From contig NW_026782185.1 in the NCBI RefSeq assembly GCF_031769215.1, positions 310,001 to 374,000 of the forward strand: a stretch of DNA of 64,000 nucleotides. The letters run 5' to 3'. Made by a program: the position numbers and the translations under genes. Below, piece by piece: positions 531 to 63,475 of the stretch. A model generated the notes under the pieces. It saw nothing but the letters and a program-made list of their open reading frames with translations. It searched no databases and had not been told where the DNA came from. The stretch is from Ylistrum balloti (Eukaryota). Every line of letters begins with the position of its first letter. The stretch's first letter is position 1.

Positions 531-2597
531 TGTTCCTTTTTATTCATAAATATCTTTTCATTTCACATTTATTTTATTTATCTTGATAGATATCAATTTC
601 ATTTTAGTTAAAACATCTTTATCATTTTCACTTTGTGTTCATGAAGCAATAAATGCTATTTCATATTGTAATATTTGTGCATCAGGATTTCTGAAGCAAA
701 AGTAATAAACGAGTTAAAATAAAATCTTTATATCAGCTGATATGTACATTTTCATAAATCTATCCAAACCCTTATAATCAGATACCGTGACTACATGATA
801 GAACCGCACTGGGCGCGATGATTTAGATGATGTTATACATGTATGTAACAATAAAGAAATGATAAATTATTTACCATATCTACCAAAACTTATCTAAGAT
901 ATACATCATGTAATATTGATACATGTTATAAAAGATTTTGGGATGTCTCCGTCCTCGTCTGTATTTATCATCTCGTATTTTTAATTCCTGTCCCTTGAAT
1001 GGTTTCTTGGTAACGTTAATACGTATATGAGGGATAACCAGTCATTATTTATGTTGTCAATGTGATGCACAGTGGTTATAGTTCGGCTGGACATAAACGG
1101 ATGATCTGACAGCTTCAGGCGTTTTAGAAGATATAGCCTTAAAGAAATGAGGTGGAGGGGGTGTTCTTTTGATTGGATCTGGATATAAAAGATGTGAAGA
1201 TATGATTAGACCAGTACCTTAACGCTTATATATATGCCTTGAACTAGGGGCTTCACAATAATCCAAGCTTGTCAGATTTATCTTCATATTGCCAACCGAT
1301 TTACTTCTCCGCAGACCACAGAATTCCGTAATTAATTAACGTAGTAACAGAATAGTATACAATACTCTGGAGCTGGGTCATAACAGCATTGAAGAGGTGC
1401 TTGGAAGATAAACATCTTTCGATAGGAGTCTTTACGTATCGAATATTCTATTTCTCTGTGTCTTTCTCTTCTTTCCAATAAGCGTGAAAACTGATTTAAG
1501 ACCCTATATATATAGAATGTCATTTGAATTGCCTATCTGTTTCCGAAACTAATACTAGCTTCATAAAAATTGATAAAGACGTTTATCAAAAGCAGCAGAA
1601 GAGGACCATGGTCCTATTTTTTGGAGAAGCATGCTTACACGAGAGTTTTGAATATTTCAAGACTTAATTTGCAATATCATTACATATGTTTATGTATATG
1701 ACGTCATGATTATTATGCGATTGACCCATCGTATTATACAGCACTGTAGGAAGCCATATTTCATAATTTCTGTGTATACATGAATTGTTAAGCTTTATCT
1801 AGTAAACAAATATGATTTCAATACAAAATTGCATTCCTTACCAGGCGATTAAGTTTGCGTAAAGTATATATATTTAAATTGTGTGCAGCCTTGTTGACAG
1901 GCGTAAAGTGATTTTAAAAAATCTTTCAAAAAGGATTAAGAAATTTCGATTCGCTCAAGTGAACGCAGAAGTTATAGGTTTAAAAGAGATAGTTGAACAT
2001 AATCACGATTGAGGTTTCGGTTGAAGGAAGTGACTTGTAACACCATGTAGATTGTAATCCTGTTCAAACGGAGTGACTTTATTTCTGTTATCCGAACATG
2101 CAATGTACTAAAAGATGTGATTATCTATATTGCTAACCTCTTTTCATTTCAGCACGCGGGTGTAAATTTCTCATATCTTATCTTTACACTTCAGTAACTT
2201 TAGTAGAATTAGAATAAGACTTACCTTCTAAAAAAAGATAAAGTTCCTCTTACAAAAGTGTAATATCTTATTTCATTTTTTGGCTTTAATGTACCTACTC
2301 ATTCTTTGGCCACATTCCTCCTGTCTGTAATCCACATACATGATCAATGTTTATGAACTCTAACTCGAACACCAGGTTTTTCGGATTCACAACCGTAAGC
2401 AATGCTGTAACAACACATGTATAATAGGCTATTGTATTCATGTCGTCTTAAGTATAGACAATGTATATGTCATGAAAATTAAATAAATAAATATACATTT
2501 TAAAAATTTTTTTTGGTTATCGCTAAGTTGATTATACAAAAGACACTCTGTTTAGGAAATATATAATTAGAGAAGAACAAATTAATAATGTAAACTT

Positions 2598-2670
2598 CAT
2601 CACACAGCTGTTTCGTCCTCCTTTGACTAGTCAGTGATGCTGAGGGCCTAAAGTTTGAAACCCTAGAGGA
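2598..2670 (-). mobile_element. Degenerate Penelope-type hammerhead/terminal-repeat relic
   Basis: Minus strand reads CATCA CTGACTA GTCA AAGGA GGAC GAAA CAGCTG TG TGATG. Same family as 8761-8865, but the core is mutated (CUGACUA) and the triplet is GUG, so it is predicted inactive. Confidence 0.65.
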
Positions 2671-3421: not shown

Positions 3422-6400
3422 TCATAGATCTGCAACACTTTTATCGTCAGGATGGAAACCGATAGGAGGTCCCTCGCCTTCCGGCGTAACCGGATCAATG
3501 ATCTACAAAGCAGAACAAACAGCATTGATTACGGACAATTATTACAATAGGTATTTTCCTTGCAACAACTTTCTTTAACTTCGAATACCAGTGTATTTCA
3601 ATAAGATTGCCAATATATGTCCTGATTTGTTACAATACAACTAGTGTTGTTTTAAGTGCTAAACAATAATTGAGAAACTCTAATTGGTGTAGTTTTTCTT
3701 CTGTTTGATTGCTTTGTTTTGCCTACCATTTCTTCAGCCAGATCATATTTGTATCTTGATGCCACTCCACACATCCTTCTACATATAGGGAAGATGAGGC
3801 GTGGTTCGACGGGCTCACCACCGTCGCCACCTTTGAGTGAAAAAGAAATGGTACCAGTATATAGAATCTTGAAGAGTAAGGTCATCATCATCTCCTTCAA
3901 AATCTGTCGACATTGTTAGACAGCTTGATTACTGAGAAGAATTTGAATTTCAAAAAATATCCCTGGTTGAGTGGTATAACACCGGTACCAAAACGATGGA
4001 ACACAACCAAAGTTCAGAAGACACTTTGATTTCTTAGGCACAAATGTGACATAATCGCAATCAACATTTAAGTCTATAGCGATCAAATTGTTGGTTGTTT
4101 CCAACACATTTTGTTGAATCACTTTCTTTCCATGTGACAGGTTTGACTATGTTAAAATGACTATTACACGTACCCGTACACAGGCTGACGACGGTACCTA
4201 GCATCAGGGTCAACAAGAATCCGATTAAACCGTACCAGACATAAGAGATGTTATACAGGAAAAAACCTTCATCTGGACTGTAAAAGTAAATTCACTTTGA
4301 CAAGCATAACTCGTGAAACAAACATTATCACTATGAACTGACACTATTAGTACACACTGTTGATTTCAGAAGTATATTCATATCAGTATTTTAAATGTGT
4401 AGTTAATATAGAGTCATTGATAATCTGTTATATTTTGAAAAGGAGATAACGGTGAGACAGATAAACAAAATAGTAACGTGATACAACTCCATGCGATTAA
4501 TAGTATTATGAAGGATAGAGTAAGTTTCTAAAATTAAAAAGCTTGTTCTTACCTGCCTAGACTGTTGGAGGAATCATTTGTATATCCATTTATATCGTAC
4601 GGAGGGGTATGCAATGTAGTATTAAAGCTATTTATAGACAAATTGTTCATTGTGGCTGTAGCGTTGTCATGGAAACACCCACTCGTGGGATTCCGTATTA
4701 ATGCTGCAGGTTTTGATCCGTACATTTGTGAGGATACTGTCATCCAGATATTGAACCCAAGACTCAGTAAACTGCCAAAAGTGGCTCCCTGAAATAATTA
4801 AACTGATGAACAAAACCAAGGTCTATAACCACAAGTAATAATAGATAGGCTAGATCTACATTGTTTATAACTGGACGAATTGTACGTCTTATACATTCTC
4901 TGATTCTATTGTACGCACTTTCCAGTTGGCTTTCGGTATCATTCCACCGAGGAAAAAAAGTCCAGCTAAAGGTCCTCCACACGCCCCAAATATTGAGAGC
5001 GCCATCTGTCAGAAATAGCAAACATTAAAACTGTTTTAATGCATTTCTAGAATCCGTCACAACACATCACACAATTGTTAAAATGAAGATGATATTTTTT
5101 ACAATTTCAACATTTAACACACGTCATTGCGAACACAACAAAGGGTATATCGACATTTTCAACAAAATCTTAATTCAAAGTCGATTAAACTAGGGCACAA
5201 TTTGAACAAAAGACAAATTCACAAGAAAACAAAAGAGAATAGTTCCGGAAGTATTAGCGTCTTTTGCGCCATCGATGACACCTTCTTAGTCAATCCAAGT
5301 AACTAATGTCACGTTCTCAAATTTTTAGTATCATTCAAAGCTACTAATTATAGTGTTGACGCAATAATTATGTTCCGAGTCAAATGAAGATCAGTATTTT
5401 AGAAATATACATGTATTTGAGAAGCAACAGGAAGTGTGAGGAAAAAGAAATATCCTATATCAGATAACACAATCGGAATGGCGTACGTGAATGATTTCAT
5501 CGATTCCTGAGTTACCTGTGTGATAGATCCTGACATTGAGTTAATGGCATACGCTAGTCCAATGACCGTCAGTCCGTACAGAAACACTAAAAAGGCAAGA
5601 AAACGTCCAAATCAAACATTTCACGAATAAAAACATTTGCTCCTTTTTTGTTTTATATGTTGTATGTAATGTAATCTAATAAACATGTATTTAACGTGAT
5701 GATCCATTCTGTGTTTAATTTTGGTTGAGTTCTTAGACACAGAAATATTCAAGGAGAAAGCAGATGTACATATTAATAATTTTCAGATTTGAACGTTATT
5801 TTGTAATAAATTTGAAATGGCACCATCCTTGTTTGAAGTTTACAAGAAAACATTTTGTGAATCAATCGGTGAAATTGGTTATCAGTTTCATGACTCAGAA
5901 GAAACACCATTTTTACTTTTTTATCTGTATTAAAACCTCGAAAATTTTAATTTGAAAACACGAAACAGTATTACTTTAAAAACATTTCAGAAGTTTAAAA
6001 AACACGCTTTACGATTCCAACATCCCAAAACTAAGCCGAATAAAAAGGTGTTTTATCTGAATTAACTATTTTGCATCACAATTGAAATCATGTTTTCAAA
6101 TACTGTATATTTGAGCAAGCAAACACAAGGAAATAATGTAAAATAATTGAATAAAAAACAAAGAACAAAATTATGACTTTCTGTAACTGTAAATGGAAAC
6201 TTTTCCAAGAATGCGTTTAAATGGTATGCCTATATCTATACAGTTATCACATCGCTTGTTTTCGTATACTACATTTATAATGAAATTGGAATTTAAGAAA
6301 ATTCATAAAATTACATAAACTGCTTATTATTCTTTTTATTCAATTAATGCTCACCAAATGTCTTTGCCGCGAATGTCTGCGAAATAAATTTTGATTTCTT

Positions 6401-9400
6401 AACGTAGTCTCCAAGAATGTCTTCCACGGTGTTGGCAGCTAAAGCGTTGATTCCAGATGATAGAGTACTGAATGAAAGAACATCATTGCTGATAGTTAGT
6501 AATATATCCATTTTACACATTTACAACTCTGACTCTGAAATACTATCGCTTTGTTTGGTCATAATAATATTACGATAGTCCTTGTGTCACAGACCGTGTA
6601 GCACTATTATATTGGGTCTCCATCATCACCTAAGAGCGCCGCCGGATACACTAATCACCTGAGAGAGCCACCAGATACACATATCAACGAGAGAGCCACC
6701 AGATACACATATCACCTGAGAGAGCCACCAGATACATATATCACCTGAGAGAGCCACCAGATAAACATATCACCTGAGAGAGCCACCAGATAAACATATC
6801 ACCTGAGAGAGCCACCAGATAAACATATCACCTGAGAGAGCCACCAGATACACATATCACATGAGAGCACCACCAGATAAACATATCACCTGAGAGAGCC
6901 ACCAGATAAGCATATCACATGAGAGAGCCACCAGATAAACATATCACATGAGAGAGCCACCAGATACACATATCACATGAGAGAGCCCCCAGGTACACAT
7001 ATCACATGAGAGTACCACCAGATAAACATATCACCTGAGAGAGCCACCAGATACACATATCACCTGAGAGAGCCACCAGATAAACATATCACCTGAGAGT
7101 ACCACCAGATACACATATCAACGAGAGAGCCACCAGATACACATATCACCTGAGAGAGCCACCAGATACATATATCACCTGAGAGAGCCACCAGATAAAC
7201 ATATCACCTGAGAGAGCCACCAGATAAACATATCACCTGAGAGAGCCACCAGATACACATATCACATGAGAGCACCACCAGATAAACATATCACCTGAGA
7301 GAGCCACCAGATAAGCATATCACATGAGAGAGCCACCAGATAAACATATCACCTGAGAGAGCCACCAGATAAACATATCACATGAGAGAGCCCCCAGGAG
7401 AGAGCACCACCAGATACACCATGAGAGGATACACATATCATATGAGAGCTGAGAGACCACCAGATACACATATTACATGAGAGCACCACCAGATAAACAT
7501 ATCACCTGAGAGAGCCACCAGATAAACATATCACCTGAGAGTACCACCAGATAAACATATCACCTGAGAGAGCCACCAGATACACATATCACCTGAGAGA
7601 GCCACCAGATAAACATATCACATGAGAGAGCCCCCAGGTACACATATCATATGAGAGCACCACCAGATACACATATTACATGAGAGCACCACCAGATAAA
7701 CATATCACCTGAGAGAGCCACCAGATAAACATATCACCTGAGAGAGCCACCAGATAAACATATCACCTGAGAGCACCACTATATAAACATATCACCTGAG
7801 AGAGCCACCACATATCACCTGAGAGAGCCACCAGATAAACATATCACCTAAGAGAGCCACCAGATAAACATATCACCTGAGAGAGCCACCAGATACACAT
7901 ATCACATGAGAGCACCACCAGATAAACATATCACCTGAGAAAGCCACTAGATAAACATATCACCTGAGAGAGCCACCAGATACATATGTCACCTGAGAGC
8001 GTTGCTCGATAATCATATCACATGGGAGAGCCACCAGATAAACATATCACCTAAGAGAGCCACCAGATACACACATCACATGGGAGCACCACCAGGTAAA
8101 CATATCACCTGAGAGAGCCAACAGATAAACATGTCACCTGAGAGAGCCAACAGATACACATATCCCCTGAGAGTGCCACCAGATACACATATCACCTAAA
8201 AGTACTTCTAGATATACATATCACCCGAGAACGTTGCTCGATAAACATATCACATGGGAGAGCCACCAGATACCCTAATCATCTGAGAGTGCCGCTAGAC
8301 ACACCTATCACCTAAGAGAGCAGCTAGATACACCTATAACCTGAGAAAGCCGCTAGATAAACATATCTCCTGAGAGAACCACTAGATAATTATATCACCT
8401 GAGAGCGTTGCTAGATAAACATATCACCTGAGAGCGCCGCTAAATAAACAACTAATGTAGATTCCAGGAATACCCGGCAGTGACCGCAACACATCGAGGA
8501 CGAAATACGGCATAAGCTGCAAATGCAAACAAAGGCATAAGAGTAGATATGGAAAACTACGAACGCCGAAAACAATATTTTCATGTTATGATACAAAAAG
8601 CATAAAGTACAGAACATTCAATGCTATGTTGGGAAATTATCGATAAAAAGAAGTGCTTATTTTACCAAGTTTCACAATCATAGCTGGCAAAAATAATGTA
8701 TAAGACAACATTTCAAAAAAAATTGAAATTAGACACAGTCTATCCAAATAATTTGTCAAGCTACATCATACAGCTGTTTCGTCCTTCTAGGACTCGTCAG
8801 TGATGCTACATCATACAGCTGTTTCGTCCTTCTATGGCTCGTCAGTGATGTTACATCATACAGCTATTCACATGTGTGTCTTTTGTACAATCTTTAAATA
8901 TCAAGATTTAAAGTCTTGGACGATTTATTATCAAGAGAGAGGAATATGAAAATGATTATTAATATTACCTGATTAAAGTTGCTTAGAAATCCCGCTTGAA
9001 CAGGATCACATTTTACAGTGTTGTAATATGAGTACAAGAGGATTCCCAAAAATCCTAGAACTGCATAGTACGTTATCACTACAGGCACAATAAGCCAAAA
9101 TGCCCTATATGAAAATAAGATAAGTTCGCATAATATATCGTTTGGATTGTTATCATAATGTCCTCAGTCTAGATACATTGTAGTCTGGATAAGACGATAC
9201 CAGTATATGGCCACTTTGTAGCATAATTTCGTTCTACTGTTTCAAGCGACAACTTTAAATCGAAGTTGTTTTAGTAAAGTGAACTCGCGGTATGCAGTAA
9301 GCAGCTGCATTCTTATAACTATTCAATTTCAACCATGAAAGCTACCGATAATTTCATTAAAAAGTGAATGCTTACATCTTAGCTGCTCTGAGAGTACGGA

Positions 9401-12400: not shown

Positions 12401-15180
12401 TAGGCAGAAGGTGTACCACAACATTCAATAGATTTCGTAATTTTCATATATCAAATAATTCTTGAACAACGCAAAGTACATGTGTATATAATACGCCATG
12501 AAATTATTCGTATTAATTAAAAGGGGAAATGCAAGTTATGACACCGCCGCGTGGACTAAACGTCCACAAGTAGTGTCTACCAATCTCGAAGATTGTACAA
12601 ATACACACAAGTAAAAACAACTTTTAACATGAATTAAAAATAAGATCTAGTAGAACCACGTAAACTACACCAGCAGTGTCTAACACCTGCACTCTCACAG
12701 ACTGTACAAAACGCACACGGTAAAGACAACTTTTGACATGAATTTAGAGCTAGATATTATAGAGCTAAATAAAACATCAACAACCAATATTTTTTGTTTT
12801 GCCTGTCGTTGACTTCTGGACATAAATCCGTTGCTTATAACGGATCATCAACTTGTAAACAATTATTTGTTCTGATGTCATTTCATTATTAGCTTTTTTG
12901 CGGGAAAAAACGATAAATAAAAATATAGTCAATGTATTGCTTAAATGAGGATATCTGCATTGTCAATAAGATAACAAAAGACATCCGCCATATATATATA
13001 TTTCCATAATAAGAAAAGTTCACAGCAAACTAATGATAGTACTACAACTAACATAGCTAAACAGTATTTTTCTTCAGTCTGGAAGATTTTAATTGTAAAA
13101 CCACCGACTGAAGATAAGACGTGAATTTTAAAATCACCAGAAAATAATGTAACAATGTGCAAATATTGATGTTTTAATTAGTGACACTGTTTAACTATAT
13201 TTTAATTAATTGAATTTTTGCGCTGCGTTCGTTGTACTGTTATGTAATACTGTGTTGCGTGCGGCCACTGTTCCGTCTACCTGTACTGTCCTTGTAAGTG
13301 TTTGATGTCACGTGTCTTACTTTGTGTTGTCCATATATGGGTATTATTCCTAATATAGGTATTACCTCGTTTTGGTCAGTGGTCAGTCCGGTTGTCTTTA
13401 TGTTTGGCGCGGTTTTTTATTAGTCCTTTGTGTGCAGACCTGGAGAGCGGACGTATAGTAGATCTAGACCTGTGTCCGCAAGATTTGAATCTTGGGCCTT
13501 GTAATTGGTTCTTCCGATATTTGGTATGTACGATAAAGTCTCAGTCTAGCTGCTCTCGTAATTGGGTTTTGTAAATTATTGATTCATTTTATAATTGAGG
13601 ATTCAGATGAAGTAAAGTTAATTAATGTGTGAAACGGTGCTTTTCATAAAGTGACGTAATTGTGATCTCATGTACGTATATATGGATTGAAGTTATTTAA
13701 AATAACAGGTGAAATATACCTTTACATGTATTTTACAGATTGATGCAAGATCTACAATTAGTCCACGCGCAGACCTTTTTCTGTCTGGCAAACCCCCGAC
13801 CCATAGTTGGGGTAGGTATTTTAATAGATATTATATGTAGAATACGAGAGTTTGTGTAATTGATAATGTCAGTTATATTATGAGTAATTATGTAATAATG
13901 TAAGTTGTAAGCAGTTTCCTGTAGACCACCATCTACTTATATATACTAATAAGCGCAAAGCTGAGTCCTATTGATATTCCTATTTAGAATAAAGTATTAA
14001 GTGTGAATGTATTAAATATGTATTTACTGGATGTACATCATGTTATGAATGTAGACAACATTTCAATATTTAATTCAATACTGATATTTTCATATATATA
14101 AGGGTATGTCAACATACCGTCTGAAGCATCCCAATCATTGTTCCTAAAGTACGAACGCCTTTTGAACGAAAACGAAGTTGAAGATACTGTAAATTAACAA
14201 ATACACGTAATGAAAAAAAATAAGATAAATAAATAAATGAAAAAATCATGAAACGGTGTCCTAAATACAGTGTGGTCTTCATTGATCGGAAAGTAATAAA
14301 ATAGTGTCCTAAACACAGTGTGGTCTTCATAGATCGGGAAAGTAATAAAATAATGTCCTAAACACAGTGTGGTCTTCATTGATCGGGAAAGTAATGAAAT
14401 AGTATCCTAAACACAGTGTGGTCTTCATAGATCGGGAAAGTATTGAAATAGTGTCCTAAATACAGTGTGGTCTTCATTGATCGGGAAAGTAATGAAATAG
14501 TATCCTAAACACAGTGTGGTCTTCATAGATCGGGAAAGTAATGAAATAATGTCCTAAACACAGTGTGGTCTTCATAGATCGGGAAAGTAATGAAATAGTA
14601 TCCTAAATACAGTGTGGTCTTCATTGATCGGGAAAGTAATAAAATAATGTCCTAAACACAGTGTGGTCTTCATAGATCGGGAAAGTAATGAAATAATGTC
14701 CTAAACACAGTGTGGTCTTCATTGATCAGATTTTAGGTCACATGTGGAATTAAAAGAGAACTTCATTTTATTATTATTTACAAAATTTCTGTTAGAAGGA
14801 AAAATTATCTTCATCTTCATACTTACCTCGTACGTACTGGTGAGCCGTAGAGGATACAGCAGAGGAACTATGGTAATACTTGCTAGCAATACGGATATGA
14901 GATAACCCAGGCCAATATAGGCTCCGCGGATTCCGTAAACGTAGGTATCGGCCGGAGTACCCATGAGTGAAATCGCTGATGCAAAAGTCACAAATAAGGA
15001 CATTGTTACCGGTAAAAGTAAAAGTCGTCTGTTTCCAAGGAAGTAATTTTCCAAAGTCGGTTTCTTGTTTGTTTTATAGCCATAGTAAATACCGATTCCC
15101 AAACAAATACAGAGGAAAATGGCTATAACGATAAAGTCAGCAAAGTGTGGTGTCGGGATAGGGACAAACTCCAACTCCAT
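3422..15180 (-). CDS. Gene A: SLC5A5/6/8/12-clade sodium:solute symporter (SMCT/SMVT/NIS-like), 16 coding exons, 618 aa
   Basis: Exons 5'->3': 15180-14827, 14186-14118, 11768-11717, 10836-10769, 10613-10533, 9868-9795, 9513-9376, 9104-8969, 8516-8428, 6467-6355, 5586-5516, 5005-4919, 4788-4553, 4277-4174, 3830-3727, 3502-3422. All GT-AG, total 1857 nt, no internal stop. Family motifs: [70 protein letters not shown]. Ends ...KSVADL*. The exact vertebrate orthologue cannot be assigned from sequence alone. Confidence 0.93.
6622..8443 (-). repeat. 29-bp minisatellite (~63 copies) filling gene A intron 9; unit = exon 9 3' end + splice donor
   Basis: Plus-strand unit atatcacctgagagagccaccagataaac; gene-sense unit ctggtggctctctcag|gtgatatgtttat. 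The real junction is ttagcggcgctctcag|gtgatatgtttat (donor at 8427). Central copies are homogeneous and terminal copies are diverged. Confidence 0.95.
8761..8865 (-). ncRNA. Tandem 45-nt hammerhead ribozyme units (2.3 copies) in gene A intron 8, sense to the gene; one intact core
   Basis: Minus strand reads CAGCUG UA UGAUG uag CAUCA CUGACGA GUCC uagaa GGAC GAAA CAGCUG UA UGAUG. It has the canonical CUGANGA and GAAA boxes (8800-8794, 8780-8777), stem II GUCC/GGAC, stem I UGAUG/CAUCA, palindromic stem III CAGCUG and a GUA cleavage triplet. The second unit (8806-8850) has a disrupted stem II (GCCA/GGAC). Activity is untested. Confidence 0.8.
10060..10100 (-). mobile_element. Partial relic of the same hammerhead-bearing repeat
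   Basis: agacccgtcagtaatgctaacgacctatattttgacacc resembles gactagtcagtgatgctgagggcctaaagtttgaaaccc (2625-2665). The GAAA half is missing. Confidence 0.4.
10200..10285 (-). mobile_element. tRNA-derived SINE head relic in gene A intron 5
   Basis: Reverse complement reads atagctcagtcggtatagcgttggtc...ggtgttcgac: a good A box and a partial B box, but no closable cloverleaf, so not a tRNA gene. Confidence 0.4.
11785..12030 (+). mobile_element. Penelope-like retroelement reverse-transcriptase relic in gene A intron 2
   Basis: Plus-strand translation gives DKSYVV...[31 protein letters not shown] and [11 protein letters not shown]. These match the PLE RT patterns EFLIDNIFVEFGGRIFQQTIGIPMGTNC and KLYDKRDDFNF (from recall of the family). 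Confidence 0.75.
14256..14727. repeat. 49-bp minisatellite (~9.7 copies) in gene A intron 1
   Basis: Unit tcctaaacacagtgtggtcttcatagatcgggaaagtaatgaaataatg, with a few alternating variants (aaaca/aaata, catag/cattg). Confidence 0.93.
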
Positions 15181-16699
15181 CGTTATTGACTACGTGGCTG
15201 TTTATTCGCACTTTTAGTTATAAATGCTGTTGATCACTTCAGCGGAGCGTAAGATCAACACCCACATATATATGACCTGAATATATTAAGATTTGTTATC
15301 ATGACCGTATAAGTCGAGATGTTGCGATGATTAAGAATATATACATTTCCATATTGTGTTCAGCAGAATTGACTTCGGTCAGGCCAAAAAATTAAAATTC
15401 TGTGTTTCTAGTTTCTCCTTGAAACCATCAGGGTCTAGCTTCTAGATTGTTTTTAAAAACTTGATTGCTTGATTTTTGACACTGGCAAGTTGATTAGGGA
15501 ATAGTTTATACCCATGCGTCAAGTGTGTTTCAGTCTTGTATATGTGTATTATGAGATGTGATTCTGTGGGTGCATCAAATGAAAGGAAAAAAAGTTAGAA
15601 GTATTTGTCAATATCTAAATATCTGCCAAGGAAAAGCAAAGTTATCAAATTCAGAAAAGATGCTAGACTGGCTACCAGTCATTAAGTAGTATTTTTTTCT
15701 ACTGGTTTATCTCCCTTTCCCGTGAAATATTTCCCCTGATTAATGATGAGCGCAGAGATGGTAAGCATATATCATCCTAAGTGTCCACATGGTTGAGGAG
15801 TAGGGAACATGCCAGGAAGGAGTGGGGTCTCTGTGTAACATATATTGGTTTTATTCTAACTGATATAGCTACCATGCAGAAGATGGAATTGTTAAATATT
15901 TCAAGGAAACGGCTTTTGTTTCTAAAAAGGCATGAAGACATCAAGATGAACTATCACGGCCGATATCCAGTATGTATCATTTTCATAGGCAGACACAGGT
16001 GCATCTTGGCCTGACGTTTTACCGAAGTTGCAAGTTTGGATTGATAAGTGTACTGTAGATTTTGGTGAACTATGGGAGTATGCATGTTCGAGTTTTTATT
16101 AGTTCTAAACGAGATAGTTGGGATGTTCCTTTATGTGTTGCCTTTCGTTTAGAAATTCATACTGTTCCGTTATTATCAATATTACAAGGTAAAGGTAGGT
16201 AGCTAACATATAAGTGTAGTAGGGAAACTGGAAACGCAGTTTTGTATTTGGCCTTATCGTGTAGCGCAGTAGTGAAATTCCTGCCTTTCATCCTGTCCAA
16301 TGAGGTGATAATCCTCTTTGACATTTTCCCTTGGATAATTCAGAGCGTTTGACTATGTAACATAGGGAGAAGAGATTCCTGATTTGTTGATTGCACTCCC
16401 TACGCGTGGAGATTGGTGTTTATGAGATAGGTGAGAGGGCCGGAGCATTTGGCCACGAAAGAAGACACTATTATTAAATCAAATACAAAACAATGCGGTA
16501 TTTAGTCTACACTCTATAGACAGACATCATGTACGTAATCTATTTGCAAATGTTAATTTTTTTTCGATATAGTGAGACGGTTCAGAATATTCATATTTTA
16601 AAATAATAAGATATAAAAAAAATTGCGATATCTATTTAATTATATGGCTTATACACTTTCTCGTGTTGATGTAGAATTTTCATCTTTTGATCATTCTCA

Positions 16700-16770
16700 T
16701 AGCTTTCACAATTACGGCCCTTCTCAGGATGTGTCCGAGAAGAACGAAACAGCTGTATAACGCAGTTTAA
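16700..16770 (+). mobile_element. Degenerate hammerhead/terminal-repeat relic (same family)
   Basis: ggccc ttctca ggatgt GTCC gagaa GAAC GAAA CAGCTG TA taacg cagttta aligns to the reverse complement of 2590-2665. The CUGA box is lost. Confidence 0.55.
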
Positions 16771-17628
16771 TTCAGTATGTGGCTCTATTGTCTCTAACCC
16801 TAAATTGTATCAAAGGCGTAATCAAAATCATAGAGATATAATTTTGTTTTAACGTTGTAGAAGGAGCCAGTTCCAATTCGAAATGTATATCATATAATGT
16901 CTATAGGTAGGAGTAAATGGAAATCATCACTACTCACGTGCTATTTTTCTGGTGTAATGAATGATGCGTCAGCGCATTTATTCTTTAAATGTATTTATAG
17001 CGGACCTCCACCAAGGCAAGCTAGTACGAACGTCATAGCTTTGGGTTGGGGACGATTTTGCTTCACCTTGCTTATACAAGATTTGTTGGGTCTATTTATA
17101 TGATAAAATTTTAACAAATAACAAATGTCGTTTACTATAATAAATGGCCATATTAAATCTAGATCTAATTATCTAGTTTTGATTTCTAATGATCTGAAGG
17201 TTTCGCACGGTCAAGATCAGCTTTAATCTAAGTTAAACGTTGTTGAACAAAAAAAAAAAAGACCTACAGCTGACATTACCATATTTCCCGATCGGATCGC
17301 TTTTCATTTTGCACAAACTGGGTGATTACATACGAGAAGTTGAATTTCATGGTATGGTGACCAAAGGATCTGCTTTAAGAAAACGAGTTGATAAAATGAA
17401 ATCAAATTTACGATAGGAGACTTTTATTTAAATATTTTCTCTACCATATGATAAGTATACTCTTTTCATTGAAACACACTGAAGAAAATATAAATATTTC
17501 TTTATGAATAATGCAGATAATATATAGCATTAAATATGAAGCTTCTACCACAGTAACATGTAAATACATAAGCCCATGCCGATTAGCGGATTTAGACATG
17601 CACAATAAACGAGGAATATTGATTCCCA

Positions 17629-33775: not shown

Positions 33776-36700
33776 ATGGGTTCGACATTTGTTCCACCTC
33801 CTGCTCCACACGTCGCCGACTATATCGTTATAGCCATTTTCCTCTGTGTCTGTATAGGGATTGGTGTTTACTATGGTTATCAGACCAACAAGAACCCGAC
33901 ACTGGAGAATTATTTCTTTGGAAACCGACGTCTGCTGGTCGTACCAGTGGCTATGTCCATTTTTGTAACGTTTATCTCTGCGATATCGGTAATGGGTATA
34001 CCAGCCGAGATATACTTGTTCGGAATCCGAATGATTCATGGAGTTGTGGCGTACGTTTTGTCTATATGTATAGCTAACGTTACCGTTGTTCCTCTACTGT
34101 ACCCACTAAAACTGACCAGCACATACGAGGTAAGGTTTACTTAACATTCAAAGACTCTCATTTGGCTTATTGGATACACGAATGACAATAGGATAGGGGT
34201 GTCTTCAATGAAACGCGTCATCATTTATAATTCACATTGAAGCCAGGTAAAGCTGTTCCATTTTCATGCTTATCATCTTTTTCATCTGACGTCTCATCAC
34301 TAGGGACGACTATCTCATTTCGTTCACATTATGTGCAATAGTCCTGCGCCTTTTAAGTTCATGAACGCCTTAGTGATGACATTCATTGGTAAATTGATTC
34401 ATATACAATCAAACAAACAAAATACCAATAGGGAACAGACTTTTACACCAAACATGAATTCGGTAAAGCTGTTTCAAAATATGAACAAATAAGAAATTTA
34501 TATGTACTCCTGGAAAAAGAATCGGCAGAATAAGACCAGATGTAAAGGGTAAGCGCTAAATGGATCGAAAATGACAAAATCTAGATGGAAAGATGCACTA
34601 GCATCACGTCGCATATAGATATATACATTTTAAGTGACATGCATGGTTTTTTGTTCATGATCCTGTGTGTGCTAATGTGCTTTCTGTGTTTCTGTCTACA
34701 GACGAATTATTATAAGTCCTAAGTTCCACGTAACCTTCATTCCACAATAGTGCTTACTTTGAAAAGTAAAATTTTCGATGTTCAATGTTTCGATATTTTG
34801 TTTATGGAAAAGTCACTGAGATACAGCCCAATAAATCGTATAAGATGGCATAAAACGAAATCTTTAATATCCTCACAATCCTACAAAGGACTTCTTCATG
34901 CTTGAAGTTATAGTCCATATGAGATATACTGACGACATCTATTGAGAACATGCAATAATATACTAGTTGACCAGGAATTGTACTCAACTATGTTTCATAT
35001 TCTACGATATCATTATTGACAACAGATTAATTTTTAAAATCTATTTATCAAATAGTATCTACAACATCGGTATAATTCCAAAAGTGTCCGCCTCATGGGG
35101 ACGGCAATCGGAATGCTTCATACGGTAAGTTTCAAGATGCGTGTCATATGCAGAAATAATGCGAATGCAATCAAAAATTGTATAATATAAATTAATAGCA
35201 CCACAGAAAAACTGGATTCCGTAACGACTGTTCTATCAAGAAAAAATATGGGAAATTATACTTAAATGAATAAAGTTTCAATATTTCTCTTGCCAATTAT
35301 AATGTAAGATATATTTTATGTTAAAGACTCGCTCGTATATAACAATGATAAAAAGAAACTGTATTTCGCCTGTTTGAATTATGAATTCTTACCTGAAAGT
35401 ATGTGTTAATGATAAAGATATTGTGAAGCAGGCAATCAGTCAATCGGAATTGAAAGAAAGAATATGTCATTCCAGTTTCAATTCTTTAATACTTTGTATG
35501 TCCTCCATTTGCACTGGTGAACGCCACACATCTACAACGCATGGAACCGATCAAATCACGCAAGAATGCTCAGGGAATGCTCTGACATATCTGACATATG
35601 CCTTACAATGTAAGACGTACAATGCTTCTAACTTCACAAGAGAGTTGGACTCCTGACGCAAACGTGGAACTAGCCAAAGAATATCGTTTTGACTGCGATG
35701 TGTAAACACCATAGGTTGGGGGTGCAAGGTTGTCGCTATCCAGAAATGTAAAAACTATTGATAGAAAAATAAAATTCATCATTTCGTTCTTTCTTCTTTG
35801 ATATGGATGTATTTTTTCCAAAAGACACACGACTGAATACCATCTTTTAGATATTATTACGCTTCGGTTATAGTTCATAAATCATATGTTTGTACCAGCT
35901 TTCACTTTTCTTGTAAAAGAATGTTCTCAAAACAAAAGATCGCAGGCACTCTTTCAGTTTTAAATTTGGTATTGTTGCGTAGTCATGTTTTGCTGGCTAA
36001 TTTAGATAAATGGGAGAACGTGAGAAGGTGTAAGTTCGTTGCGGTAGCGCACATTTGTTAAGCTTCCATCCACCATAACTAAAGAGGTCCTTCCAGAGGC
36101 TGTAATGCCAGCCCAGATCATAATGCTTCTTCTTCCGAACTGGTAACACTGAATTGCACAAACATCGATAAAATGTTCTACCGGCCGAAGGTACACCCGA
36201 ATACAACCCTTTCTGTAACAAAGTAAAATCTTGACTTGTTTGTGAGTAACACTTCAGAGCATTCTCTGTTGATGAATAGGAGAAGATTCTTACACCAAGC
36301 TACCTGCACAACTCTGTCACGTTGTAGCAAAATAGAAAGCGGAACGTCTCAGGCGGATGGTAGCCTCTCGCCTTATGTTTCGTGAGGTTCTGAAACTGAT
36401 CCGTTTAAGACCAGAGATATTGCTAGCGATCAATGAAGATTACTGGAACCGAATTCGCAAATGCAACTGCCGTATATACGTTACTTGTCCACGTAACGTT
36501 TTAATACATGACAAAATATTTCCGGACAAACAATTATTTTCTGTGTTATTAGTTTGTGGTGCCTAGTTTCAAAACTCTGGGGAAATATGCACTGACCATT
36601 GAAGCTTAACGAAATCAAATTTTCATTCGAACAAGGATCTATTACTTCAAATAGGTTAAATACTTAAAAAAAACTTTTAAAATTATCGGTGATTTATTTT

Positions 36701-39700
36701 TTTATTTTTATATTTTCCGTCAGTATATATGAGGAACCAAAAACATGTGTTGACCATTAAGCATAACAAAAGTTTTTCACCAAACACAAAACACTTCAAA
36801 ATATGTCTTTTGTAATTATCGGTGAGGAAAAGACTCAATTAGTATATATGCTTATATCGATATTTTATGTCTTTGATTCGATTCTCTATTACCAGTAATT
36901 AAGAAAAAGATTTGTCTGAATCTCCACACAAGGAAATACAGTCTCAATATTTAAGATAATACTGCCACTAAATCTATGAAACCTTTACTTCTTTGCAGGT
37001 GATTTATATGGGGATCGCTCTTTACGCTCCAGCATTAGCTCTTGAAATTGGTACGTAGCTACACACAGATATAACTAACTGTTTGGTGCTCGTTTCTTTT
37101 ACCTGCAGTTGTATATTTTCGGACCCGATATTTTAGCTTCAGACTGAAACAAAATATCGTGTGGATATGAAATAGATGAAATAGCGAAGCTATGAGTCTA
37201 TGGCTTGTGTTGCTTTAACTTCATGATGTTATATACACCGCGACGTAACTAGACAAAGACATGAAGCATGAAAAGATCGCTAATTTGGCTTGCATATCGG
37301 TATACAACAAGGTTGTTCTCAAGAGGCTTGCAAAAGTATCATACTTTCGTCTCGGTGAAATAACACCTCATTTGAAATAGAACCTTATATAAGAACAATG
37401 TATATGAACAAGCAACATAAGTCAGATCGAAATCGACTGATATTTTGAAAGTTTAATGGATTACTTAATAATTTGAACAGAGATCACTTTGCGTGATCAA
37501 TCCCAAGTGATAGGATGAAAAAGAGGTCAAATGAACCTTTAGTGTTCTAACAAGTCCCAATTTCCATTGCAGTGGCTGGGATACCACTGTGGGTTTCTAT
37601 AGTTGTCATTGGATTTGTCTGTACTATATACACAACAATCGTATGTATTTATTTTACCGTCTTTACTGACATCATGAATCACCATCACTTTACAGTCAAG
37701 GGAAATGATCCATATAGATATCTAACAAATAAAGAAAATTCATACAAATACATCAATGATATTAAAACATGGAACACGATTATTTTACACCAAGTATTTC
37801 AAACTTCACAATTTTGCCACAATTTGATGCATAACTTTGTCAAATGTTAAATTCAACTATTATCAATTTCTCTTAGTGAGATAATTAAAATTAATTGATA
37901 TCTCAACGTTTGGTTTACTAATGATTATGATACAGAGTGAAATGGTCATGGCAAATTCAAAATGTTTCAGGGAGGAATCAAAAGTGTTGTATGGACTGAC
38001 GTTTTTCAGTGTATTATGCTGTTCGTTGGAATGATAGCTGTTATCATAAAAGTAATTATATCTCGAAATGTAAATGGAATTATTGTGTAAAAGACAATAC
38101 TAAAATACTCCCCAAATTTCAGTTCAAACTTACAATTGGTGGCACGTGAGCAAATGACGACAAAAGAAATATTTACGTAGTCCACAATGTCAATCTGGAC
38201 AAATTCTCGAACCGGAACCAGTTTGAAAAAAAATGGAAACAAAATAAAAAGTCTTTCTATTAATCCCTAAGCGGTTTAACTCGACCAACAAAGATGATTA
38301 AAAAAAGATGAAACGAATAACAGATCTCCGAATTACATTATACTGTGGACTTTTCAAACATCCCATTGTATTGGAAAATGATAGATGTTTTATGCTACTG
38401 TCATCTAGCAGATTTATGACAAACAACAGATTATATTTCGAAAATCATTTATAATGAATGTACACTTTCAACATATACACGTGAGAAATGACACAATTTA
38501 TCAACCGTTTTGTCATAAAATGTATATATCTTTATTTGTTTTTGAAATAGGGCACTATTCTGATAGGACCGAGTCACTCAATTTTGGGAATCGCAACTGA
38601 GGGAAAGAGACTTGAGCATTTTAAGTATAAACTCATTGCCTTAATAGAAAAAATATCAATTAATTCAAACCATCTTATAAGTAGAACAAAAACCAAAAAA
38701 CAGCGGAGTAGAAAACACACCGATATCAATGAAAGAAAGTTTGAGGTTTTGTCTTCATTTTATTTCAGCTCAAAGCTGAAAAAAAGTAATAAAAATCTTG
38801 AAAAAAAAAACATTGCCATGGCGATAGTCAACAACGGGAGAATATCAAAATAAAAAAAAAGTTTTGAATGTCTCCGTTGTATGTATGTTTTGTGTTCAGT
38901 AGGAGACAATAATGCAAAAATAAAACAACATCTTTGACAAAAAGTAGCCTGAAATAACGAAAAATATACATTATGATAGCGGATCACTAAACGTGTATCT
39001 TTTCCGTCAAATTCTAAAACTTTATATTGATATATCTGTTCACTTTATTTTATTTAAAAAAAAAATTCTCATTACTTTTATACATTGACTACAAAGTTTA
39101 AGTGTCTTTATTTGTTATTTTCCACCAGCTTTGACCCAGATCCCAGGATTCGTTACAGTAATTGGGGTTTGTGGATTGGTCTTGTGTTCTCAAATCTTGC
39201 AAACTGGTGCAACCAAGCAAGTGTCCAGAGGATTTCTTCTCTACGGAGTCTTAAATCAGCTTATTTGTGAGTAATAATTTGTGCCTCTTGAGAACAGATT
39301 GAAATGATAATTGGTTTTTAAAAAGACCTGCTGACCAATTTAACAAGAATTGACTAAAAATAATTAAAAAAATTCGATAAACATTTAATCATAAGATGTC
39401 CAATATACCCACTACGTGCAAACATACATAGTAAAAAACAGCTGTCGTTTGGATTTTACAGTGCATTTTGGATGCTTGGTCCACTTCTTGTGATGTTTTA
39501 TACCATCCTTGGATACTTGGGTATCCTTATTTACTCCTACTACAACACTTTGGAATGTGATCCACTTCAAGGAGAATTTATCTCGAACATCAATCAAGTA
39601 TTCTTATGATACATCAACATTCAGACATTTAATCAGGAATCATGTTCCACAAAAATTCAATACTTTCAACAGTAACCAGATCATTTCTTCGTACACGTAA

Positions 39701-51100: not shown

Positions 51101-54100
51101 TACTAATGACTGCGGAAAAATGAAACGGCCATAATAATTTCAATAAGGTTCGCCTTTATTTTAGGGAGGAATCAAGAGCGTTGTATGGACGGACGTCTTT
51201 CAGTGTGTTACGATGTTCATTGGAATGATAACTGTTATCATAAAGGTATTTACATCTCGAAGTGTAAATGGAATTATGTTATAAAAGTCGTGATGAGGTG
51301 CATTTTTCTACATATCCTGTATCCCTCCATACATATGTATCTTGCGCCACTCATCGGTGCCGATAATTTGTACCCCATCTTTTTGTTGTACATATAGACT
51401 GAAGTTAATGTCATTCAGATCTATATATTATATAACAACAGTGATTGATATTATGGTTGTATTTGAAATGTTCCTGTCATTTAATAAATGACCATTTGAC
51501 AACATTTCTTTTCCCTGTTGTTTTTTGTTTATAAGACATGTACAACAAATAACAAGCTGCAGTCTCTGAGCTGGGTTACCGTGCTAACACAAATGGAATT
51601 ATACTATAAAAGTCATTAAGAAAATAACATAATTTCACCTCAAACTGACAAATGAAATGATTGAAAGAGATACCAATTACATTCTGCTGTGTAATTTGCA
51701 CTTCTCACAATAGAATAGAAAAAAAAAAAAAACAAACATGTTGTGTTTTATCTTTGTCTACTTCCATTTAACAGATTTGCGACAAACCATCGAGTATATT
51801 TCTGTATTTTGAAAATCATTGATATTGTGGGTGAACTCGTTTTACAAACATATGGACAGTTCTTTCGTAAAAATGGCACATTTAATAAAACGTTGTCTTC
51901 TTAAGATGTTTATATATTTTTTGTTAAAGGGCACCATCCTGATAGGACCGAATCACTCTATTTTCGGAATCGCAAGTGTTGGGAAGAGACTTGAGTTTTT
52001 TAAGTATAAAATCATTGCTTTAATTGCAAATTACTTATCAATTAATTGAAAACATCCTGTTTATCTACAATGTAAGAAATAACAGAGAAGCAAAAAGAAA
52101 AGAAAAAACCAGCTTATTGATATTAAAGAAAGAAAGTGTGACTTCTTGTCCCCCAAGATCCGGAGAAAAGAGGAGGAAGATTGCAATGACAACAATCAAC
52201 AACGAGAGAAATTAAAATCAAGTTTTGAATGTCTCCGTTGTATGTAGGTTTTGTGTTTGGAAGAAGAGACAAAAATGAAAAGATTAAAAACACATTATTC
52301 CATTAGTCAATTGCTCAGTCTATGCATACGTAGCATCTGGATGTGTAATGATAATACTTTTTTTTGATATTATGTGTTTAGGCTACCACTTCCAATTAGT
52401 ATATGTATCTTCCGTTAAATTATTTTTCTTTAAAACTGTTATATGAATTATTTTCGTCAAATACTAAAACTTTATATTGTAGTATTGGTTCACTTCGTTT
52501 TATCTTAAAGAACCCTATATCATTGAAATTTATCACAAAGTTCAAGTATCTTTATTTGTTATTTTTACCAGCTTTGATCTAGACCCCAGGATTCGTTATA
52601 GTAATTGGGGATTATGGATAGGTCTTGTGTTTATGAACATTCCAAACTGGTGCAACCAAGCAAGTGTCCAGAGGATTTCTTCTCTCCGGAGTCTTAAATC
52701 AGCTTATTTGTGAGTAATGTATTTTGCCTCATAGAAACGGAGTTAGAAATTAATTATTGGTTAAAAAACTCGTACACCCATTGACCAATATTTTGGGACA
52801 CGTATTAAATGAAAGGTATATTCGATACACACTTAAAGATTAAATGTCACATATACCCACAAAAACACATAGTTGATAAAGTAGCTGTCCCTCTTTTTTC
52901 CACAGAGCGTTTTGGTTGCTGGTTCCACTTCTTCTGATTTTGTATGTCTTCCTTGGATTATTGGGTATCATTAGTTATTCTTACTACAACACTTTGGAAT
53001 GTGACCCACTCTTAGGAGGATTCATCTCAAACATCAATCAGGTAGTATTCTCGTGATATATCACCTTTCTACCATTTTGTCAGGAATCATGTTTGAAGAA
53101 TCCTTAATTGTTTCAATAGAAAAAAGCTTGAATCAACAAATAAATGATATATTTAGGTGTAGCTTTTGATGAAATTATAATTTTCTTTTGTATATTCAAT
53201 ACGAACGTGAAATATTTTGCTTCTTTGCTGTGAATGAGTTTCTAAAGACTTTCCTTTTATGCCTTTCCATGACTTAAACGTTGCATATCTTTTCCATTGT
53301 AGTTGATACCTTATTTCGTGCTCGATGTGTTGCGATCTCTTCCAGGATTTTCCGGTGTCTTTATCAGCTGTTTGTTCAGCGGGGCACTTAGGTAACAATT
53401 AGCTGACTCATTTCTACATTGGATATTTAATTGAGATATTGCAAAGCAGAGTTGTTCTGTTGGTAAGAGAATGAAAGGTGTGAAAACTTAAATTCAAGAT
53501 TATTGTTTTGGCAGATTTATAAATAGAAAAATTGTAAAGGCTAAGATTGCGCCTTGTTTCATTCATGGTATATTAAATGGGTTTTTTAAACAAAAAACAT
53601 TCAGAGTTTTGCGTTTTTTGGTCTCGTTTCATCGATTGCTTGTTTCAATATCGATATTGTTTATATGTCAGCATTTTTCTTGCACAGTATGTAAGTTTTA
53701 TGTTGTATTTTCAGTACATTTTCGTCGGGTATCAACTCTTTAGCTGCCAACACTGTAGAGGATATTCTGGGTGACTGCGTCAAAACATCCAAGATGATTT
53801 CACAAACACTTGTAGCAAAGTTATTTGGTGAGTTGTGAATTGTTTAGTAGGAAAAATGTCGCGTAATACAGTTCATTTTTCTCCATTTAAACAACATTAA
53901 CAGCAAACGTATTCCTTTACAATTAAATTTAATATTCAGTTTGTCATTGACGTTTCCCTGTAGTGATCTTTTATGGATTGGTGGTCATTGGGCTAGCATA
54001 CGCAATCAACTCCATGCCAGGTTCAGTGATTCAGGTAACTACCTCAATACTTAAAGTGCCATCGTTCGAAAAGTCTGTATGCTGGATATAATTGAGTTAA

Positions 54101-61051: not shown

Positions 61052-63475
61052 ATGGATTCGACATTTGTTCCAGCTCCCGCTCCACACATCGCCGACTATA
61101 TCGTTATAGCCATTTTCCTCTGTGTCTGTATAGGAATCGGTGTTTACTATGGTTACCAGACCAACAAGAACCCGACACTGGAGAATTATTTCTTTGGAAA
61201 CCGTCGTCTGCGTGTCCTGCCAGTGACTATGTCCATTTTTGTAACGTTTGTTTCTGCGATATCGGTAATGGGTCTTCCAGCCGAGATATACGAGTTTGGA
61301 ATTCGAGCTATTTATGGAGGCGTGGCTCACGTGTTGTCTTTATTTATAGCTAATATTACTGTTGTCCCTCTACTCTACCCACTAAAATTGACCAGTACTT
61401 ATGAGGTAAGATTGAAGATCAATAACGTTTTGAAATAACATATTTGGGGGACTGGTTTTGAAGATAAATAGTACGATTCTATAATGGATTTTTGAAAAAT
61501 ATTTACTTTAAACCAAGATTTCACATCTTCCCCTAAGGATCCTTAGTTAAAACAGGCTACAAAAAGACACTATTTCTTATCAAGAAAAAATGTTTACTTT
61601 TGGAATCAGAGTTGATCGTGGAGGTGATTTGTTCAAGGAACAGTTATATAACACTAATTAGGCATTTTGTCTTCTTACGAATCCTTCTAAAATTCATATA
61701 CGATATGCATTTTATATATTTTCTGATATGTGTTTTCTGTTCATGGTTTCGGCGTCCTTATGCAATTTTCATTTATTTGAAAATTACGACATTTACCAAA
61801 TTATTTGGCAAGTACATCCTCCTATCTACATTTTGACTTTTTTTGTCGATCAAGTTTGATTATCATCAACCTCCTGGAAACTTTGATATTTAAAAGAGGC
61901 ATTTTTTAGTATTTCCTTGATTTCATACAATTCGAAAATTTTGAATAACATGTCACTTCCCGAAGAAAATTTCAGAAGTTTATATATTGATACAAAGGTT
62001 ATGACCAAAACAATGCCTAGTTGACTGGTCAAGTCATATGTGTTTCTTGCACGAAATGTATGTCCGACATCCTGTGAGAGTGTGTATATCAGATATACGG
62101 TGGGAGTGTGTATATCAGATATCATGTGGGAGTGTGTATATCAGATATCCTGTGAGAGTGTGTATATCATATATCCTGTGGGAGTGTGTATATCAGATAT
62201 CCTGTGGAAGTGTGTATATCAGATATCCTGTGGGAGTGTGTATATCAGATATCCTGTTGGAGTGTGTATATCAGATATCATGTGGGAGTGTGTATATCAG
62301 ATATCCTGTGGGAGTGTGTATATCAGATATCCTGTGAGAGTGTGTATATCATATATCCTGTGGGAGTGTGTATATCAGATATACGGTGGGAGTGTGTATA
62401 TCAGATATCCTGTTGGAGTGTGTATATCAGATATCCTGTGAGAGTGTGTATATCAGATATCCTGTGGAAGTGTGTATATCAGATATCCTGTGGGAGTGTG
62501 TATATCAGATATCCTGTGGAAGTGTGTATATCAGATATCCTGTGGGAGTGTGTATATCAGATATCCTGTGGGAGTGTGTATATCAGATATCCTGTGGGAG
62601 TGTGTATATCAGATATCCTGTGGAAGTTTGTATATCAGATATCCTGTGGGAGTGTGTATATCAGATATCCTGTTGGAGTGTGTATATCAGATATCCTGTG
62701 AGAGTGTGATATCCTGTGAGAGTGTGTATATCAGATATCCTGTGAGAGTGTGTATATCAGATATCATGTGGGAGTGTGTATATCAGATATCCTGTGGGAG
62801 TGTGTATATCAGATATCCTGTGGAAGTGTGTATATCAGATATCCTGTGGAAGTTTGTATATCAGATATCCTGTGGAAGTGTGTATATCAGATATCCTGTG
62901 GGAGTGTGTATATCAGATATCCTGTGAGAGTGTGTATATCAGATATCCTGTAGGAGTGTGTATATCAGATATTCTGTGGGAGTGTGGACTCCTTGTTTTC
63001 TGAGTTGCTGTTCATTACCAGAAGAAATTCCATGACGTTCCTTGTTTCCATCAGTTACTCGACTATATTATCTTTTCTGAAAAATACCTTAAAGTTCCTG
63101 GTGTCTCCATATTCATTAAACAAATCATACATAAAATCGTATTTCTGTAACCATTTTTACTAACATCTGTTATGAAGGACAATTCACTAGTAAAGACAAA
63201 GGCTGAGTTACCACAGAAGACGTATGAACATATGATGAATTGCAATGATAGATAACAATCCATACGAGTATTTGGGACATATATTTCTTATAGTAATTAA
63301 TCAAACTCTGTAAGCAACGTATTTCATTTTACTAGGAATTCGAAAATGACAACAAATTAAAGCTAAATCATGAAGTACTATAATTTTTTATTTATTTTCT
63401 AAACAGTACCTACAACTACGATATAATTCCAAAGGTGTTCGTCTCATGGGGATGGCAATTGGAATGCTTCACACG
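61052..63475 (+). CDS. Gene E (5' partial): SLC5A5/6/8/12-clade sodium:solute symporter, exons 1-2 only, continues beyond window
   Basis: Exon 1 61052-61405 (MDSTFVPAPAPHIADY...LTSTYE, donor GTAAGA). Exon 2 63407-63475 (YLQLRYNSKGVRLMGMAIGMLHT, donor GTAGGT). Same sizes (354, 69 nt) as in C and D. Confidence 0.88.
62069..62986. repeat. 26-bp minisatellite (~35 copies) in gene E intron 1
   Basis: Unit gtgtgtatatcagatatcctgtggga with variants (gaga, gaag, ttgg, catg). It explains the stack of overlapping ORFs at 62038-63003. Confidence 0.96.

Follow-up and report, generated by a model that had tools for sequence, protein, structure and literature searches.

Does a tandem array of hammerhead ribozyme sequences inside an intron act on the transcript of its host gene, or is it what remains of a dispersed repeat? 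The question is raised by a stretch of 64,000 nucleotides from Ylistrum balloti (NCBI RefSeq assembly GCF_031769215.1, contig NW_026782185.1, positions 310,001 to 374,000 of the forward strand), here referred to as the window, in which intron 8 of a transporter gene, here referred to as gene A, contains a short head-to-tail array of a 45-nt hammerhead unit. We consider it likely that this array is the relic of a hammerhead-bearing, noncoding dispersed repeat that lies in the sense orientation in intron 8, was multiplied by duplication at the DNA level, has a small effect on its host, and drifts neutrally. The tandem hammerhead itself, noted in a preliminary description of the DNA, is confirmed, and the interpretation offered there is partly supported.

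The array and its hammerhead core

Tandem Repeats Finder (TRF) places a 45-bp repeat of 2.4 copies at 8760-8865, with 95% matches and no indels; the preliminary description had counted 2.3 copies of this unit on the sense strand of gene A, and the sequence is as written there. The array and its parts are as follows.

8760..8865, minus strand: 45-bp tandem array of 2.4 units (TRF, sequence, and unit alignment)
8865-8821, minus strand: unit 1, AGCUG-UA-UGAUG-UAA-CAUCA-CUGACGA-GCCAUAGAAGGAC-GAAAC
8820-8776, minus strand: unit 2, AGCUG-UA-UGAUG-UAG-CAUCA-CUGACGA-GUCCUAGAAGGAC-GAAAC
From 8775, minus strand: partial unit 3, AGCUG-UA-UGAUG-UAG, then unique sequence
8816..8866, minus strand: upstream junction hammerhead with damaged helix II, predicted cut after A8859 (Hammerhead_3, 37.3 bits, two noncanonical pairs)
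8771..8821, minus strand: intact junction hammerhead, type-III-like, predicted cut after A8814 (Hammerhead_3, 48.4 bits; minimum free energy [MFE] structure of the 51-mer, P 0.56)
8763..8806, minus strand: the intact core read as a type I monomer, with CAUCA/UGAUG as helix I and a helix III limited to A-U and C-G around an AGCU loop, for which the cut would follow A8769 (Hammerhead_1, 32.7 bits)
8700..8759, minus strand: 3' flank common to the dispersed family, present once, after the last unit (BLAST, MAFFT)

The hammerhead core was defined by C3 U4 G5 A6 N7 G8 A9, G12 A13 A14, the A15.1-U16.1 pair, and a cleavage triplet of the form NUH. Unit 2 and each of the three junctions have CUGACGA, GAAA, and GUA; the last bases of the GUA triplets are 8859, 8814, and 8769, with 8858, 8813, and 8768 as the next bases. 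The junction hammerhead at 8821-8771 reads CAGCUG-UA-UGAUG-UAG-CAUCA-CUGACGA-GUCC-UAGAA-GGAC-GAAA-CAGCUG and is built from a helix III of 7 bp, CAGCUG(U):(A)CAGCUG, a helix I of 5 bp, UGAUG-UAG-CAUCA, the core CUGACGA / GAAA, and a helix II of 4 bp (5 with U-A), GUCC-UAGAA-GGAC. All of its pairs are canonical and, as had been claimed, it carries every conserved hammerhead nucleotide. Units 1 and 2 differ in the unit alignment at 3 of 45 positions, one in loop 1 and two in helix II, so that stem II of unit 1 is GCCA/GGAC instead of the GUCC/GGAC of unit 2; the two helix II changes have no compensating change. The core nucleotides of unit 1 are intact, and its defect is in helix II pairing. Only one of the two catalytic cores (unit 2, 8800-8778) is fully intact, and the label of an intact tandem ribozyme holds for that core and fails for the upstream unit.

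No Rfam family reaches its gathering threshold (GA) in a search of the whole window. In E-value mode, the same search returned Hammerhead_3 with 37.3 bits at 8866-8816 (E 2e-4) and Hammerhead_1 with 32.7 bits at 8806-8763 (GA 34; E 3e-4), the best unit, 8821-8771, being masked by the overlap rule. With 8821-8771 as the sole query, Hammerhead_3 scored 48.4 bits (GA 48.5; E 1.2e-10) with no noncanonical pairs. Both members of clan CL00010 fall short of their thresholds, by 0.1 bit for Hammerhead_3 and by 1.3 bits for Hammerhead_1. A chance resemblance to a hammerhead was ruled out by the E-values together with the homologous copies found elsewhere.

Each candidate hammerhead fold was enforced with ViennaRNA in contexts of 136, 209, 452, and 674 nt, and the ensemble free energies were compared. 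The shares listed below come from nearest-neighbor folding, with tertiary contacts and cotranscriptional traps lying outside the model.

Type I monomer with a 2-bp helix III, cutting after A8769: share of 2e-4 alone and 1e-7 to 1e-9 in context
F1, core 2 with helix III from CAGCUG#1:#3 and unit 1 inside loop 1, cut 8859/8858: share contained in the joint figure
F2, core 2 with helix III from CAGCUG#2:#3, cut 8814/8813: share contained in the joint figure
F1 and F2 jointly: ensemble share of 0.45-0.62 over the four contexts
Full double-hammerhead fold: share of 1e-4 to 1e-6

F1 is the MFE structure in all four contexts and takes the larger ensemble share in the three shorter ones, with F2 taking it in the 674-nt context; for the 51-mer 8821-8771 alone, the MFE structure is the hammerhead fold (P 0.56). 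These predictions support the view that the tandem layout lets neighboring CAGCUG palindromes pair as a helix III of 6 to 7 bp, giving a type-III-like fold that is stably predicted, and practically no molecules are predicted to adopt the single-unit type I fold. Since the duplication provides the missing helix III, the proposal in the preliminary description that it supplies a pairing partner holds thermodynamically for the type-III-like fold; the full double fold, by contrast, is predicted to be rare. Likewise, the GUA sites proposed there (8814/8813, 8859/8858, and 8769/8768) are correctly placed, but the predicted cut favored in most contexts is 8859/8858 and not 8814/8813. The folding and covariance-model searches that the preliminary description had suggested thus yield hammerhead folds that dominate the ensemble and a Hammerhead_3 score just below the gathering threshold.

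A dispersed repeat family and its relatives

According to BLAST and MAFFT comparisons, the hammerhead is the center of a dispersed repeat with conserved sequence on both sides. Seven family copies, from the window and from a comparison locus, L001, of GCA_031769215.1 (taken as a related bivalve), share the hammerhead and about 30-50 nt per side; the 5' flank reads ...CCTCTAGGTTT.AAA..TAGGCCCTTAG, and the 3' flank has the consensus TTAATT.A.TATTTGG...TGT.TCTAATT. Besides the intron array, these copies lie at two places in the window and four in L001, and all six are single and most are dead, as in the following examples.

2596..2641, minus strand: dead single copy with the 5' flank, G8 changed to U (CUGACUA) and the cleavage triplet GUG
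16733..16797, plus strand: degenerate single copy that has GAAACAGCTGTA and the 3' flank but no longer the 5' half of the core
L001:5855-5895, minus strand: family copy, G12 changed to A
L001:8222-8266: family copy, helix II broken

The homology of the intron copy to 16733-16797 extends to 8729 (BLAST). The array in intron 8 has the 3' family flank and lacks the 5' family flank, beginning instead with the last 15 nt of a unit. When the 40 nt upstream was compared with the remainder of the intron, no direct repeat of at least 7 nt was found that could be a target-site duplication, and among the metagenome contigs scanned there were 0 matches to the unit-junction pattern. The preliminary description had proposed that only the core was duplicated, and that this happened at the locus; nothing shows an in-place event, given the mid-unit start, the absent 5' flank, and the retained 3' flank.

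In L001, decayed single copies of the family lie inside introns of two SLC5 paralogs (16155-16187, plus strand, and 5855-5895, minus strand), one in the sense and one in the antisense orientation. Both sit at intron positions other than that of the copy in intron 8 of the window.

The preliminary description had further likened the unit to the minimal hammerheads of Penelope-like elements, a class on which Lunse et al. reportedly worked in 2017. Such ribozymes have a helix II of 7-8 bp, a helix I of 4-5 bp, and no helix III (PMC4209133), whereas helix II of the array has 4 bp (5 with U-A) and helix III consists of C-G and an AGCU loop. Because helix I has 5 bp, helix II 4 bp, and helix III a C-G pair with a palindromic AGCU loop, the hammerhead is, judged by its sequence, of the "canonical metazoan type I" architecture found in retrozyme-type repeats. 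The array also differs from Penelope copies in having no reverse transcriptase or GIY-YIG open reading frame (ORF) nearby, as no ORF of at least 120 amino acids (aa) lies within about 5.8 kb of it. Ten ORFs of this size occur in the window; six coincide with tblastn matches and are SLC5 exons, and the other four (49348-49746 and three at 62040-62927) were left out of the domain scan. A Penelope pseudo-long terminal repeat (pLTR) proper was ruled out by the helix architecture and the lack of a nearby ORF. Solitary Penelope-type copies far from any ORF are common, and the absence of an ORF does not exclude a Penelope-like derivation. What is shared with Penelope minimal hammerheads (PMC4209133) is a mostly solitary, dispersed, and high-copy occurrence in invertebrates, a palindromic helix III region, and a predicted need for a dimer, the monomer being predicted to be inactive.

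The likeness to metazoan non-LTR retrozymes (Cervera and de la Pena 2020, PMC7229834) is closer in architecture: these elements have one type I hammerhead per unit, with a helix II of 4 bp, a helix III of 1-2 bp with a palindromic loop, and a helix I of 5-6 bp; they form head-to-tail repeats in AT-rich sequence whose neighboring units can cooperate; and their hosts include bivalves, with about 5000 copies in mussel (PMC7229834). Head-to-tail repeats with a type I hammerhead in each unit are found here as well. In contrast, published retrozyme units are about 150-450 bp long and include a self-paired non-ribozyme body (PMC7229834), whereas the unit in intron 8 is 45 nt of ribozyme only, its helix I is closed by a 3-nt loop, and only 2.4 units and no target-site duplication were found. 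Activation by tandem copies has been described for type I hammerheads with a short helix III (PMC4209133, PMC6155905).

In the double hammerheads of newt satellite 2 and avocado sunblotch viroid (Forster et al. 1988, as reported in PMC6155905 and PMC6765202), tandem helix III strands pair as one long helix and form active sites that a monomer cannot form, and the type III hammerhead at the array junction corresponds to the inner half of such a fold. In the same accounts, those ribozymes lie about 250-330 nt apart, whereas the units described here abut directly; moreover, the core in the outer half of the fold would be the damaged one, and the predicted share of the full double fold is very small (see above). 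A different parallel is provided by conserved intronic ribozymes, namely, amniote HH9 and HH10 in RECK and CTCL and the HDV-like ribozyme (HDV, hepatitis delta virus) of mammalian CPEB3 (PMC6155905, PMC10919898), which are likewise sense-strand intronic motifs probably derived from retroelements. Unlike the array, these are single copy and deeply conserved at orthologous positions, and for CPEB3 an effect on host mRNA and protein has been measured; the array belongs to a repeat family and is unconserved among the paralogs and homologues examined.

Gene A and the expected effect on its transcript

Exon 1 of gene A (15180-14827, minus strand) matches the Pfam family SSF (PF00474), and its ORF has no database record. 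A profile-free search with this exon led to P0002, a 617-aa homologue from GCA_031769215.1, which maps onto gene A as 15 colinear exons from aa 1 to ~588 without internal stops. On this sequence evidence, gene A is an apparently intact SLC5/SSF transporter gene, in agreement with the preliminary description. The exon for aa 280-325 is exon 8 by the exon structure of P0002's own gene in L001, and the surroundings of the array are as follows.

8969..9103, minus strand: exon 8 of gene A, aa 280-325 of P0002 (P0002 mapping)
8517..8968, minus strand: intron 8 of gene A, 452 nt, GT at 8968-8967 and AG at 8518-8517
8430..8516, minus strand: exon 9 of gene A, aa 325-353 of P0002 (P0002 mapping)

The array lies on the sense strand, starting 103 nt after the donor (about 100 nt had been noted, and the GT..AG borders are confirmed) and ending 243 nt before the acceptor, and it does not overlap the splice signals. 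RNA polymerase II crosses 243 nt in seconds. For retrozyme hammerheads, cleavage rates of about 0.8 per min in coral and 0.1 per min in mussel have been published (PMC7229834), and hammerheads of Penelope type cut poorly even as dimers (PMC4209133). In the work of Dye 2006 and Fong 2009, as summarized in PMC2995048, splicing went ahead in introns that a hammerhead had cut, and only a fast ribozyme blocked it. Because of the slow cutting, the short distance to the acceptor, and the published splicing of cut introns, the intronic array is expected to have little effect on gene A, and the competition with intron 8 splicing envisaged in the preliminary description is unlikely to be meaningful. For the intronic ribozyme of CPEB3, inhibition alters mRNA and protein levels (PMC10919898); that ribozyme is conserved and is followed by about 10 kb of intron (PMC10919898).

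Gene A is the first of five tandem SLC5 / sodium:solute symporter paralogs that P0002 mapping places at 3742-64000 of the window, as listed here.

15180 to 3742, minus strand: gene A
27942 to 18471, minus strand: paralog B
33776 to 43404, plus strand: paralog C
47392 to 55912, plus strand: paralog D
From 61052, plus strand: paralog E

Exon 1 of each is 61-69% identical to the 617-aa homologue, and the closest protein relatives of gene A are only 66-69% identical to it. Locus L001 has at least three tandem SLC5 paralogs as well. A second comparison locus, L002, is from Mizuhopecten yessoensis and stops before exon 8; it and L001 are homologues of the gene A region and not clear orthologs. Intron 8 has no hammerhead in any of the paralogs B, C, and D, nor in two L001 homologues, so that the conservation expected of a domesticated ribozyme is absent among loci that include no true ortholog. 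By our own arithmetic, the core, of roughly 14 positions, would escape three random hits in about one case out of three. As the decay of unit 1 is uncompensated and sparing of the core is expected at this rate, nothing indicates constraint, and from the sequence, with two noncompensated helix II changes among three unit differences, there is no sign of selection on the array. In L002, about 115 nt (13954-14071) matches the miRNA-precursor model mir-5014 on both strands, well below gathering, and probably represents a repeat that forms a palindromic hairpin.

Minisatellites are unusually frequent in the window, for example at 44150-45467 (40 bp x 33), 62057-62986 (26 bp x 36), and 1-373 (50 bp x 7.4). 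Ten arrays with periods of 26-75 lie within the 64 kb, and gene A has two more of these in its introns. Most of intron 9 is taken up by 63 copies of a 29-bp repeat (6625-8450), whose unit includes the last bases of exon 9 and the GT donor (CAG|GTGATATG), so that the 5' splice junction of this intron recurs dozens of times within it. In intron 1, a 49-bp unit is repeated 9.8 times (14248-14727); this array adjoins exon 2 (about 14186-14115) and is the second of gene A to abut an exon boundary.

Origin of the array and its significance

In the scenario that we favor, that of a relic, the source repeat would be of retrozyme type or related to Penelope-like elements, and the array would have arisen at the DNA level by minisatellite-type tandem duplication of the 45-nt ribozyme module, which would have preceded a 5'-truncated insertion, within the source element, or followed it, at the present site. 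The data fit equally well a 5'-truncated copy of a multiunit element and a local duplication for which the short TAGC repeat on either side of the module served as the seed. That this genome makes minisatellites readily is suggested by the ten arrays in 64 kb. In bivalves, short arrays inside mobile elements are a described pattern (PMC7492417, PMC11136912), and in Xenopus about 44% of retrozyme copies are intronic, according to a preprint (10.64898/2026.07.22.740005). If the intron is transcribed, the intact core (8800-8778) could pair with a neighboring unit through a 7-bp helix III and cut after A8859 or A8814, and two successive cuts by this single core would release a 45-nt RNA, 8858-8814. 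Such cleavage is expected to lag behind the completion of the short intron, gene A would probably be little affected, and the copy would be drifting neutrally, with one unit already without helix II pairing.

Several points weigh against the relic reading. From the lack of the motif in the paralogs, a set with no true ortholog, it follows only that the insertion came after the gene duplications. No target-site duplication was found that would support insertion by retrotransposition. Apart from the free position N7, unit 2 does not depart from the family consensus, and none of the three cleavage triplets is damaged; this state could reflect recent origin or constraint. Finally, the folding takes no account of tertiary contacts or of cotranscriptional traps, for example, a capture of CAGCUG#2 by CAGCUG#1 before other pairings form.

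The 5' truncation of a multimeric cDNA predicts a mid-unit start such as the one seen, with the last 15 nt of a unit, and could point to an origin at the RNA level, in which a 45-nt hammerhead RNA was circularized, reverse transcribed by a rolling circle, and inserted as a 5'-truncated multimer. For metazoan retrozymes, circular RNA intermediates have been proposed (PMC7229834), and for Penelope-like elements they have been discussed (PMC6765202). However, the array runs into the ordinary 3' flank of the family, which a copy of a 45-nt circle would not have, no target-site duplication accompanies it, known retrozyme circles measure 170-400 nt or more (PMC7229834), and ten unrelated minisatellites in the window show that duplication at the DNA level suffices; we regard this route as unlikely. 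A working cis-acting ribozyme, made by duplication at the locus and domesticated so that its cuts in intron 8 of the gene A pre-mRNA adjust splicing or mRNA output, would fit the sense orientation in an apparently intact gene, the fully paired, near-threshold type III hammerhead, and the dominance of the hammerhead fold in the predicted ensemble, and it has precedents in the intronic hammerheads of amniote RECK, CTCL, and DTNB (PMC6155905) and in the CPEB3 ribozyme (PMC10919898). On the other hand, the motif is missing from intron 8 of the three paralogs and the two L001 homologues, unit 1 decays without compensation, the acceptor is only 243 nt away from a hammerhead whose bivalve and coral retrozyme counterparts cut at about 0.1-0.8 per min (PMC7229834), and slow intronic hammerheads do not prevent splicing (PMC2995048). 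Such a function for the array strikes us as quite improbable.

Assemblies may missize short tandem repeats, and the Rfam gathering thresholds are not reached, which would suit a misassembled tandem or a chance resemblance. The units differ at 3 of 45 positions and so are not merely identical reads that were collapsed or expanded; the window and L001 contain further, homologous copies; and with E-values of 2e-4 to 3e-4 for the whole window and 1.2e-10 for the intact unit alone, the chance reading is effectively refuted. Artefact or chance taken together is extremely improbable. It is conceivable, but very unlikely, that the 45-nt hammerhead-only repeat is itself a working minimal retrozyme, in which a double cut is followed by circularization by tRNA ligase and circles or multimers serve as templates that spread the arrays. 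Its RNA could be released from the intron or lariat and would carry 5'-OH and 2',3'-cyclic phosphate ends; if this were true, it would be by far the smallest ribozyme-bearing replicating unit known in animals.

In summary, tandem hammerheads in animal repeats were known already, and what appears to be new here is a unit of 45 nt without a body. In the literature searched, there appears to be no description of ribozyme-only 45-nt arrays in which each junction is a fully paired type III hammerhead. The array in intron 8 is a short and partly decayed example; lying in sense orientation within a short intron, in a gene that appears intact, it suits a test of cleavage by transcriptome sequencing (RNA-seq) or end mapping. 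If such arrays cut, they would provide a natural minimal system for the dimer-dependent activation of hammerheads and possibly a source of very small RNAs.

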